Below, in pieces: positions 2,117 through 63,703 of a stretch of DNA of 64,000 nucleotides. The notes under the pieces are model-generated. The model did not search any database. It saw only the letters and a list, made by a program, of their open reading frames with translations, and was not told the DNA's origin. This DNA is from Sminthopsis crassicaudata (taxonomy: Eukaryota): positions 443,267,261 to 443,331,260 of the forward strand of contig NC_133620.1 in assembly GCF_048593235.1 (NCBI RefSeq), written 5' to 3'. Within the stretch, counting starts at the first letter, position 1. Each line of letters opens with the position of its first letter. Both the position numbers and the translations under genes were made by a program.

Positions 2117-7646
<5,530 letters not shown>

Positions 7647-8399
7647 GGCTTCGGAGAGAAGAGCGCCGGCGACGGCAGGAAAGAAGGACCCCGGCCAGAA
7701 GGGCTCGCCCGAGACGCGCCTGATTCAGAGCGTACTGCGTCTGCGCATGAGGAGACAGACAGGCAGGCGAGCCTCCTTTAGAGTTTCTGTCAGGAAGGGT
7801 CCTCGGGAAGCTGGGAAACTGAGACCCTTTGGAGAAACGGTGGGCGTGTCGGACGTCCCCCCATGCAGATCTGAAGCAATTAGTCGCGTGATGTCAACCC
7901 TCCCCCCAGCTTGTCCTTAGCAGTTTGGGTACCACAATTCTAGCAAAATTAAGCAGTCCGACAGCAAAACGCAAACAAAACCGGGACAAAGCTGAGCTCC
8001 TCAGGCTGACAGCGGCATTCTTATTGTCAGGCCTCTGAGGTCAGAGCTTCCTCCCCCTCTGCCCTCCCCAAGGAAGGGTCCCTAGTACATCCGTTAAAAT
8101 AACCGGGCGTCTTCGGAGACCAACAGCAGCAGGCGGTTACACCAGCCTCGGCTTATGAGGATGGGGGAAGAACAGAGTTTTTCATGTGTTAAGATACAAA
8201 CAGGTTCCGAATGGAAAAGAGGTGACTTCCAACGGTCGAATTCCAGTCCTGGATTCTAGCCGTTGGAAGTTTTTCAAATAAAACCCACAAAAATTATGAC
8301 AACCATTCTTATAAAAAAAAAAAAAATCAGTATTTTCCAGACTCATCTATTCTGCATATAGTGGACACTTCCTGTGTTATAGTCAGTGAACATTTTAAT

Positions 8400-9630: not shown

Positions 9631-10041
9631 AGGAACATTGACCTTGGGGAAAACACAAGTTATGTGGCCTCTGAAAAGAGGTTCCAGAACACTTCTTCCC
9701 TTGGATTATGACTTTGCAGTGAGGACATTTCTATCTTTCTCCCCTCAAAACAACTACCTGGGATGGGGAGAGGGGATTACTCTTTGAGGAAACATGAAAT
9801 GGCTTTCAGAGAGTAACATTGGAAAGCCTGTGTGTTGTCTCTGAAATATCTTTGAGTCTTTGGGTAAGGTAGATATGCAGAGCAATAATGAAGTCCTGAG
9901 ATGAGTTAGGGCCAGGGTTTCTGTCTGTGTCACAATGGGACTGTCTCTGGCCTAGCGGGTCACAATGATAGTAGGTAACAGAAGTCTCCAGATCCTCTCT
10001 CCCCATCTCATTTTGCCAAAGGGTGGCACTGAATTAAGAAA

Positions 10042-10214
10042 CTGCCTTGTTATAGGCTGTGCCCTCCTATATATTCCCTTTCTTTTATCAAGAAAGGGAA
10101 TAAACTAAACTCTTTGTTCCCATTCTGCTCTCCCTTTGCCTAACTGAATTACTGTTACAAGTACCGGCTCACCGTTCGGGAGAAGATGATGCCTTGTAAC
10201 CCTTGTCTCAGAAG
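10042..10214 (+). CDS. OAZ3: OAZ3 first coding exon: CUG-extension region plus AUG-initiated MMPCNPCLR
   Basis: aagaaaCTGcct at 10042; the frame reads LPCYRLCPPIYSLSFIKKG...FA*LNYCYKYRLTVREKMMP; in-frame TAA at 10141; ATG at 10186; donor GTAATA at 10215. Confidence 0.75.
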
Positions 10215-12454
10215 GTAATATTTTTAAGCTCTTCCCAAGCTACAGTTGCTTCTTTAAACTCTCTTCTTCCATCTGCATTTCAAATTTCAAAATAACTTAC
10301 CAACTGGCAAGGGGTGGGAAAATACTGAAATAGGTTGGGGTGGAGAATTCTTAGTAATAAAGATGTTGGTTTAGAAAACAACAGAAGAGGATTTAATGAT
10401 TTGGGGAAAGGAGATGGCATGAGGGGGTCCAGTGTTTCCCACCATGCACAGATAAGCACCTAATTTAGGCCCCTGCTTCTTAACCAGCTACATCGTAACT
10501 GAGAGGGATAACCTGACACTCCGACCTCGGTGCTGCCTCCAGTGCTCCTGAGTCCCTAGCAGGCCTCCAGGTGGGCAGAAGCACTGATCAGGGAGACCAC
10601 GAGCAGCTCAAAGAGCTGTACTCGGTAAGTGAACTCTGAAGAGGACCCCCATCCCATCTCAGTACTTGCTCTCCATAGCAATATTCTAGAGGAATAACCA
10701 GTTGAAGGAGATAGTCATAATTTGTAAGGGAATTTAGAGATTTAGTTGAAGCTCATTTTACAGTTGAAAAACAGGTTCATGGAGGAGCATAATTATCCAG
10801 GGTGACAAAGTGAAAATTAGAAACCAAGTATTTTGATGTCCAATGTTTTTTCCACTTTAGTATGTCCTTCAGATGACATGTCCAGTTTTCATTTCCTTAT
10901 TCATAAGAGGGAAGAGATAGAACAAATCTAAATGATAAAGAATTAGAAGAGCAAGCAGTGGGCAGGAAAGAATTTGATATAATTGCCTTGAAAACAGGAC
11001 AATATTGCTATTTTGGGAAAGATTTTTTTCTGTTGGAATGATAAAATAAGAGAAGGAATAAAGTCTTCAACTTTCTAAACTCTACCAGGGAAGAATTCAA
11101 CCATCTCTTAACTGTAATGCCTCTAGGGATAATTGCTAAATTGAGGTTAGACAATATGCTATCTAGATAATCTGATTTTTGAGTGTTAAATTCTGGAATT
11201 AAGGGATACTATGAAAGCTCCAGTGAAGTAATCTCACCTCACTTTTTTTTTTTTTTTTTTTGAGGGGGGCAAGTTTGGATGGCAGCATTCAGTTAAAGAA
11301 AACCCTTTTCTAACTTTAGACTTTTTTTTTCCCTTTACAGGCTGGGAACCTGACGGTGCTAGCTAATGATTCCCTGCTCCACCAGGACCCAGTACAATTA
11401 GATTTCCACTTCCGCCTCACCCCTCAGGCTTCTGCCCACTGGCACGGCCTCCTCTGTGACCATAGGCTCTTCCTGGACATCCCCTACAGGGCACTGGACC
11501 AAGGCAATCGGGAGAGGTGAGAGTAGAACTGTTCATTATTCCAAGTTGGATTACTCTCATGGGACAGCCAGGCAGTCAGCTATCCCTGAAATGTGATCTC
11601 TAGATGTGAAAGACCAAGACACATAGGGATTAAATGAAAACGAAGATATATGTAAGATGAGATGGCATACAAATGGAGCCCTGTTCCATAGATAAATGGA
11701 GATGGGCTTAAGGCACAAAAAGACATGGAGCCCTTAGGCTTCTAGAAACCGATATGGAAGAATATTTTTCCTATGGTAGGAAAGAGTCCTTGGCTTTTTA
11801 CTTTACTTTGGATAAGTCTAATAAGCTGCAGAATTTGGAGTATTTACGACACCAACTTAGGAAACGTGCTCTTTGGGTTTAGGTCAAGGAAGGATCAGGC
11901 AGCAGATGAATTTGATCATAGGCTTGTCCCCTATTATTGTGTGGTTACACTCAGTAGCTTCTCTTTCTCTGGCTCCCAGTTTGACAGCGACACTGGAGTA
12001 TGTGGAGGAGAAAACAGATGTGGACTCAGTGTTTGTGAACTTCCACAATGCTAGGAATGACCGAGGTATTGGGGTTGGGAAACTGCCCTGTCCACTTTCT
12101 GTCCTAACCTTGTGTTGGAGACCCTCCTATAGTTCCTTTTCCTCTGAATTGTTGAGACTGTGGGCTTGGGAAGTAATCCTTACTGGGAGTTTTCTATCTG
12201 TACTTGAGGGAAGTTGGGAGACAAAAGAAGGGTATGGAGAGGTGGAGGGATAAGAAAGTGGGTAAATTCAAAAAGGGCTCGTCTAGTGACTTGCTTTCTC
12301 CTCCCTCGTAGGTGCCTTGCTTCGGGCCTTCAGCTACATGGGCTTTGAGGTGGTTAGACCCGACCACCCTGCCCTCCCACCCTGGGACAATGTCATCTTC
12401 ATGGTATACCCTCTTGAGAGGGATTGTGGCCACTTATCTAGTAAGCCTTCCTAA
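10186..12454 (+). CDS. OAZ3: Ornithine decarboxylase antizyme 3 (testis antizyme); needs a +1 ribosomal frameshift; 189 aa from the AUG
   Basis: ORF1 join(10186-10214,10488-10548) = 30 codons, then TGA. ORF2 in the +1 frame join(10550-10624,11341-11516,11980-12065,12312-12454) = 159 aa. Motifs LKELYSAGNLTVL, DFHFRLT, LEYVEEKTDVDSVFVNF and RAFSYMGFEVVRPDHP match OAZ3. Confidence 0.93.
10488..10624 (+). CDS. OAZ3: OAZ3 exon containing the frameshift site
   Basis: cag acceptor; (S)YIVTERDNLTLRPRCCLQCS-TGA; +1 frame ESLAGLQVGRSTDQGDHEQLKELYS; donor GTAAGT. Confidence 0.95.
10546..10552 (+). other. Antizyme +1 programmed ribosomal frameshift site UCC-UGA-G
   Basis: TGC TCC TGA G ends ORF1 and the antizyme domain continues only in the +1 frame; established antizyme mechanism. 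Confidence 0.92.
11341..11516 (+). CDS. OAZ3: OAZ3 exon
   Basis: AGNLTVLANDSLLHQDPVQLDFHFRLTPQASAHWHGLLCDHRLFLDIPYRALDQGNRE; tttacag acceptor, GTGAG donor. Confidence 0.95.
11980..12065 (+). CDS. OAZ3: OAZ3 exon
   Basis: SLTATLEYVEEKTDVDSVFVNFHNARNDR; cag acceptor, GTATT donor. Confidence 0.95.
12312..12454 (+). CDS. OAZ3: OAZ3 last coding exon
   Basis: GALLRAFSYMGFEVVRPDHPALPPWDNVIFMVYPLERDCGHLSSKPS then TAA. Confidence 0.95.
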
Positions 12455-30940: not shown

Positions 30941-31093
30941 NNNNNNNNNNNNNNNNNNNNNNNNNNNNNNNNNNNNNNNNNNNNNNNNNNNNNNNNNNNN
31001 NNNNNNNNNNNNNNNNNNNNNNNNNNNNNNNNNNNNNNNNNNNNNNNNNNNNNNNNNNNNNNNNNNNNNNNNNNNNNNNNNNNNNNNNNNNNN
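30941..31093. other. Assembly gap (N run)
   Basis: Direct reading. Confidence 1.

Positions 31094-55076: not shown

Positions 55077-63703
<8,627 letters not shown>

Follow-up and report, generated by a model that had tools for sequence, protein, structure and literature searches.

Antizyme 3 has been proposed to carry a 48-amino-acid extension that starts from an "absolutely conserved CUG" (Ivanov & Atkins 2007, PMC1874602), a substantial share of antizyme 3 initiation takes place at this CUG (Atkins et al. 2016, PMC5009743), and OAZ3 is one of 24 genes with GENCODE non-AUG extensions in a published list (Fedorova et al. 2022, bioRxiv 10.1101/2022.05.02.490320). The product of ORF1, p12, has an activity of its own via MYPT3, and a separate function has been proposed for mouse p12 (PMC5009743). 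In the dunnart DNA analysed here (the window, 64,000 nucleotides long), the extension lies upstream of the OAZ3 AUG and is divided by an in-frame TAA. This arrangement raises the question of whether the stop is real, when the extension ceased to be selected as a peptide and what the remaining CUG frame might do.

The OAZ3 gene and the interrupted CUG frame

The gene was identified as OAZ3 because, in a splice-combination search, one splice set with one +1 shift gave a product equal, residue for residue, to RefSeq NP_001277230 (P0019) of Sarcophilus harrisii. That protein has the ODC antizyme domain PF02100, which ORF2 of the window also encodes, and ORF1 and ORF2 give the annotated antizyme 3 only via the +1 shift at TCC TGA (10546-10551). 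The gene lies between MRPL9 and TDRKH, and the window aligns over 4.9-15.5 kb to the orthologous loci, where bL9m precedes OAZ3 on the minus strand and a KH+Tudor gene follows it. From the AUG onwards (the AUG-started ORF1, the UCC-UGA +1 frameshift site and ORF2), OAZ3 is intact in the window, with the following parts.

10186-10214, plus strand: start of the AUG-initiated ORF1 (ATG ATG at 10186-10191) to the exon-1 donor
10214/10215, plus strand: exon-1 donor, AG/GTAATA
10488-10624, plus strand: exon 2, with the remaining ORF1, the +1 frameshift site TCC TGA (10546-10551) and the start of ORF2; exact match to P0019
11341-11516, plus strand: exon 3 (ORF2)
11980-12065, plus strand: exon 4 (ORF2)
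12312-12454, plus strand: exon 5, coding part of ORF2 including the stop codon
10186-10214 joined to 10488-10548, plus strand: ORF1, 30 codons, ending at TCC TGA
10550-10624 joined to 11341-11516, 11980-12065 and 12312-12451, plus strand: ORF2 after the +1 shift

Runs of N, which are assembly gaps or masked stretches, occur in the window at 30941-31093 and 56833-56852.

Upstream of the AUG, rereading and translating 9700-10600 confirmed the layout given in a preliminary description of this DNA: from the CTG at 10042-10044 (context aagaaaCTGc), 33 sense codons run to the TAA at 10141-10143 and 14 further sense codons lead to the ATG at 10186, which makes 48 codons without an indel. A gapless alignment of 17 species places these 48 codons in frame with the AUG; in the window, the frame between the CUG and the AUG is closed by the TAA. 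The CUG has a stop and no AUG in frame upstream of it, and no ATG was read in the window sequence from the CTG at 10042 to 10186. The same in-frame TGA arrangement upstream of the CTG is found in hedgehog. The geometry fits that predicted for an upstream open reading frame (uORF), with 33 codons and then a 42-nt spacer, so placed that it would end before the main AUG. The features of this region are as follows.

10030-10032, plus strand: in-frame TGA, four codons 5' of the CTG, which closes the frame upstream; invariant in five of five aligned marsupials
10042-10044, plus strand: CTG (CUG) at which the OAZ3 extension begins; conserved, position -3 being A and +4 being C
10042-10140, plus strand: 33 sense codons that used to belong to the extension; a CUG-initiated uORF provided that the CUG still serves as a start
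10072-10102, plus strand: predicted RNA hairpin (minimum free energy and centroid folds) of 12-13 bp, codons 11-21, with the SLS(Y/F)..KKG motif
10141-10143, plus strand: in-frame TAA, codon 34; the most parsimonious change is TAT>TAA at 10143
10144-10185, plus strand: last 14 extension codons, from the stop to the AUG; a 42-nt spacer that opens with a poorly placed CTG

The reality of the TAA was checked by means of sampled 31-letter words (31-mers) in Logan contigs, about one word in ten being sampled. For 9800-10700, six DNA runs from two samples contained 87 of the 87 words sampled. For 9990-10214, all 18 words were present in at least six more runs (X7, X8, X10, X13, X14 and X9, from four other studies, P3, P4, P6 and P7), so that every sampled word occurs in at least 8 samples from at least 6 studies. 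We estimate a chance of about 95% that at least one sampled word spans the TAA codon itself. The label of run X9 names a different organism (B), although its share of the exon-1 words is 1.00. In X34 and X35, two runs from the same organism as the window, the share of sampled exon-1 words drops to 0.83 and 0.78, as against 1.00 in the others; this shortfall could reflect low coverage or a variant in exon 1. None of the listed runs that match the exon-1 words is on record as RNA. A 66-aa spurious ORF beside exon 1, used as a query for contigs of other individuals, gave no match, and the stop-to-stop exon-1 ORF of Antechinus, used as a homologous-protein query, returned no candidates and no further dasyurid sequences. 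The TAA allele is at least common among the sequenced animals. An assembly or sequencing error, which the preliminary description had listed among its options, is most improbable, because all of the sampled words are present in many runs.

Age of the extension and history of the two stops

The 48 extension codons of the window align without gaps to 16 other amniotes, namely Sarcophilus, Antechinus, koala, Dromiciops, wombat, opossum, six eutherians, three turtles and the alligator. Extension DNA was compared for Sarcophilus, Antechinus, koala, Dromiciops, hedgehog and painted turtle; wombat and opossum entered as proteins only. Each of the 14 non-dasyurid species examined has Tyr at codon 34, and 14 positions are invariant across these species (SLSY, G, RN, P, AY, Y, Y, Y, M), with the window stop taking the place of the invariant Tyr of the AY pair. 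The 14 codons 3' of the stop (NYCYKYR.., the best-conserved block) are unchanged in the window. Because of the gapless alignment and the Tyr34 shared by 14 of 14 non-dasyurids, the frame, length and position of the extension are far beyond chance. The eutherian extension of the same 48-codon length, with Tyr at the position of the stop, had been given as background in the preliminary description, and it holds against both the alignment and the published accounts (PMC1874602, PMC5009743).

An OAZ3 extension with the same core motif is present in turtles and the alligator (L007:1001-1160 of Chrysemys picta; proteins P0057, P0059 and P0067). The turtle RefSeq model also begins at a CTG, four codons further upstream, and the extension is thus amniote-wide and reaches beyond eutherians. 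From turtle to marsupials, the bases immediately ahead of the start (CACTTTGCC...GGCACTG) are conserved as well, and the CTG, its context and 25 nt upstream are invariant in all five marsupials. The 50 nt 5' of the CTG (window 9990-10041) are almost invariant in the five marsupials; they hold a pyrimidine tract, CACTGAA and a TTAAG/ boundary before AAACTG, and could be taken for a 3' splice site no less than for a promoter or leader.

Around exon 1, the identity of the window is 97.5% with Antechinus flavipes and 96.7% with Sarcophilus. In a maximum likelihood tree of 3.4 kb, the window falls within the dasyurids (support for the clade, 100/100) and outside the pair formed by Sarcophilus and Antechinus (80/78), a position that we take to be the one expected for Sminthopsinae. 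At codon 34, the window has TAA, Sarcophilus and Antechinus both have TGT (Cys), koala has TAC and Dromiciops has TAT. The most parsimonious history would give the dasyurid ancestor TAT, with T>A at 10143 in the window lineage and a Tyr>Cys change (A>G) on the Sarcophilus and Antechinus branch.

Sarcophilus harrisii has a stop of its own, an in-frame TAA at extension codon 21 (AAA>TAA; L002:2917-2919, also L001:2917-2919), which is present in both devil assemblies, GCA_902635505.1 and GCA_048593225.1, identical over 8245 nt. Codon 21 is AAA in the window and in Antechinus. Since the window keeps AAA at codon 21 and Sarcophilus has TGT at codon 34, the dunnart and devil stops are independent. 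The extension frame of Antechinus flavipes is open, and the NCBI model P0025 (272 aa) reads through it from an upstream exon. We found no report in the literature of loss of the OAZ3 extension in marsupials.

Selection on the extension and on ORF2

Ancestral states were assigned by parsimony on the five-marsupial alignment. On the dasyurid stem, the extension has 14 nucleotide changes, with 10 replacements in 48 codons and a dN/dS of 1.08, versus 8 nucleotide changes, with 1 replacement in 159 codons and a dN/dS of 0.04, in ORF2. Inside the dasyurids, all six changes in the extension are replacement or nonsense (Y34 to stop, K21 to stop, F32L, Y34C, F15L and R46Q), and all three changes in ORF2 are silent. 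The stem replacements Y15F, K20N, R22L, Y24S and Y26F fall at residues that vary little or not at all elsewhere; of the 14 invariant positions, 3 have changed in the dasyurids, as against 0-1 in most other species and 3 in the alligator. Outside the family, the extension gives a dN/dS of 0.42 for koala versus Dromiciops, and of 0.16-0.25 when hedgehog is compared with either of these two.

Amino-acid changes are divided between the extension and ORF2 as 16:1 in dasyurids versus 7:10 between koala and Dromiciops (Fisher p=0.0024), and the stem alone, with 10:1, differs from the same pair with p=0.016. A branch codon model (GY94/F3x4, seven taxa, stop codons treated as missing) gave an omega of 1.49 for the dasyurid clade versus 0.31 for the background (2dlnL=5.85, p=0.016); the error on omega is wide, because the data comprise 48 codons and the DNA of three dasyurids and four outgroups only. 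The direct contrast of replacement to silent changes, 17:3 in dasyurids versus 8:5 between koala and Dromiciops, is not significant (p=0.21). On this small sample, neither the stem dN/dS nor omega gives a sign of purifying selection on the dasyurid extension peptide. An omega near or above 1 could also mean a changed function instead of loss. All signals nonetheless agree, within a small data set, in pointing to an extension that has probably been unconstrained as coding sequence since before the dasyurid radiation, in a gene that is otherwise tightly constrained.

The preliminary description had taken the conservation on both sides of the stop to imply selection until recently. The three dasyurids differ by only 3.6-5.5%, and in the dasyurid subtree the extension has 6 changes versus about 9 expected at the intron 1 rate and about 13 at the mean intron rate; given this low divergence and the 6 versus about 9 changes, the sameness of the extension among dasyurids carries little weight. 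Among the marsupials compared, the extension has changed most in the dasyurids. In the window lineage, the other 141 nt of the extension have 0 changes besides the stop, versus 6.5 expected at the mean intron rate (0.046 per site; P=0.0013). The adjoining intron 1, however, changes slowly (0.018 per site in the window lineage, which gives about 2.6 expected changes and a P(0) of about 0.07), and for this reason the test with P=0.0013 is not relied on. Some nucleotide-level constraint may act on the dasyurid extension, but it would be modest. As far as these comparisons reach, the likeness of the extension to that of eutherians is a legacy of a long constrained past and no sign of recent selection. 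With close relatives as the comparison, a stem dN/dS of 1.08, an omega of 1.49 and a second stop in Sarcophilus, the idea of selection until recently is left unsupported. Because of the low divergence, the stem dN/dS and the devil's own stop, we read the dunnart stop as part of a decay that runs through the family rather than as a single recent event.

Fate of the CUG frame in dasyurids

The arms of the predicted hairpin, AUUCCCUUUCUU and AAGAAAGGGAAU, would pair with about -16 kcal/mol, 30 nt 3' of the CUG. The hairpin can be folded in all seven species with DNA (the window, Sarcophilus, Antechinus, koala, Dromiciops, hedgehog and turtle); its 5' arm is invariant, and its 3' arm differs only by A>G changes that preserve pairing. 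Its arms code for SLS and KKG, which are invariant, so that constraint on the peptide suffices to account for the hairpin outside the dasyurids. The hairpin may have arisen simply from the coding of the invariant SLSY..KG peptide, or it may be an element of initiation or translation.

The second of these possibilities bears on a reading in which the decayed extension is kept as a regulatory CUG uORF that, together with the hairpin, tunes the flow of ribosomes to the AUG. This reading is compatible with decay, and it would account for the invariance of the CTG, its context and the upstream 25 nt in five marsupials, for a hairpin kept from turtle to dunnart, for an extension that lies below the average intron rate within the dasyurids and for a CUG frame that closes before the AUG in both of the stop-bearing species. 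However, the peptide motifs encoded by the arms explain the conservation outside the dasyurids, and the rate deficit is gone when measured against intron 1; we regard the regulatory reading as tentative and rather doubtful. It is unlikely that the TAA is a recent or still segregating nonsense allele in an otherwise functional extension, possibly enriched in a captive colony. The absence of any other lineage-specific change in 141 nt would suit such an allele at the mean intron rate, and the incomplete words of X34 and X35 could hide a variant, but the former signal fades at the intron 1 rate, and the full set of sampled words recurs in at least 8 samples from at least 6 studies. Peptide constraint was, moreover, already absent on the dasyurid stem, and Sarcophilus lost the frame independently.

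Continued production of the extension, whether through programmed readthrough at UAA-C or through a start at the CTG of 10144 that would give a 14-residue extension, had been put forward as two further options, and we consider either very unlikely. A C at +4 makes for what is generally the leakiest stop context; such a C follows the UAA here, the 14 codons past the stop are unchanged, and a CTG stands directly after it. UAA is, however, the tightest stop codon, the site is without a UGA-CUAG-type motif, the centroid fold of 10030-10214 has no stable 3' structure, and the stop is not conserved, the relatives having TGT or TAY at codon 34. The CTG at 10144 has a poor context (-3 is T, +4 is A). 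All three dasyurids have it, with TTT in the other marsupials, and, being common to the three, it is older than the stop and no compensation for it. Neither route would serve Sarcophilus, where the codon-21 stop would require a separate rescue.

Rescue by an upstream AUG exon, after the Antechinus model, was also considered and rejected. P0025 starts at an ATG beside the MRPL9 promoter (L003:3001-3101) and joins exon 1 at a point 3 nt 5' of the CTG. The homologous upstream exon of the window, at about 7645-7745, has an ATG at 7645 and AT in place of the donor (7746-7747), which is GT in Sarcophilus and Antechinus; the Sarcophilus exon, with its GT donor kept, has a 1-nt gap inside it. A product from this exon in the window would still meet the TAA. 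No second OAZ3 exon 1 was found in the 64-kb window.

We have established the facts of the sequence, the independence of the two stops, the relaxed dN/dS of the extension and the intact, strongly constrained AUG-started form. The explanation that we consider probable is a decay throughout the family, in which the CUG-extended OAZ3 and p12 of dasyurids lost their coding constraint, the CUG frame of the dunnart became a 33-codon uORF and OAZ3 is started from the AUG. A counterpoint is that the Antechinus frame is still open and is modelled as coding by NCBI (P0025). A CUG uORF with an AUG start was among the options of the preliminary description and fits best; the recent selection presumed to have preceded it does not stand, in view of the stem dN/dS and the devil stop.

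Under decay throughout the family, constraint on the extension would have been lost from the dasyurid stem on, and two independent truncations would then have followed. If the mRNA includes the CUG and translation still begins there, the ribosomes concerned would terminate 42 nt short of the AUG, after a peptide of 33 residues; most of them would be lost, because a spacer of 42 nt is presumably short for efficient re-initiation. Ribosomes that scan past the CUG would reach the ATG at 10186 (A at -3), translate the 30-codon ORF1, shift by +1 at UCC-UGA and produce antizyme 3. Provided that the AUG is the working start and the stop is fixed, neither an extended ORF1 product (p12 in mouse, the partner of MYPT3) nor an extended antizyme 3 would any longer be possible in the dunnart or the devil.

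The dunnart locus has the same gene, CUG, 48-codon length and register, upstream stop and lack of an upstream in-frame AUG as the CUG extension of mammalian antizyme 3. Unlike in the latter, the frame is closed at codon 34 in the dunnart and at codon 21 in the devil, and the dasyurid peptide gives no sign of purifying selection. The AUG product is identical to that of Sarcophilus OAZ3 (NP_001277230, 189 aa, annotated from the AUG); the extension is interrupted in both species, at codon 34 in one and codon 21 in the other, by different substitutions. In common with the general class of non-AUG extended proteoforms that have become, or alternate with, uORFs, there is an in-frame near-cognate start upstream of an AUG, and the stop makes a uORF of the extension; most members of this class lack deep conservation, whereas the OAZ3 extension spans turtles and the alligator to eutherians and is lost in dasyurids. 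The case is one of recurrent, lineage-specific loss within a known and deeply conserved non-AUG system, and no new mechanism is demonstrated by it.

The OAZ3 CUG extension is among the best-conserved vertebrate non-AUG starts. OAZ3 itself is a sperm gene, typically expressed in male germ cells after meiosis. For annotation, dasyurid OAZ3 should start at the AUG, as the curated RefSeq record of the devil already does. For research on recoding and translation, the dunnart, the devil, Antechinus and the opossum offer a comparative handle on the role of the extension and of p12. Two independent cuts beside a tightly selected antizyme amount to a natural experiment, and suggest that the extended forms are dispensable for male fertility in some lineages. 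p12 is implicated in sperm head-tail attachment via MYPT3/PP1. It can be imagined, as a speculative possibility, that dasyurids have dispensed with an extension more than 300 million years old, together with the extended p12, and have re-used the remnant as a CUG uORF and hairpin that gate the AUG. If this were true, dasyurids would be a natural knockout that separates p12 from antizyme 3 proper in spermiogenesis.
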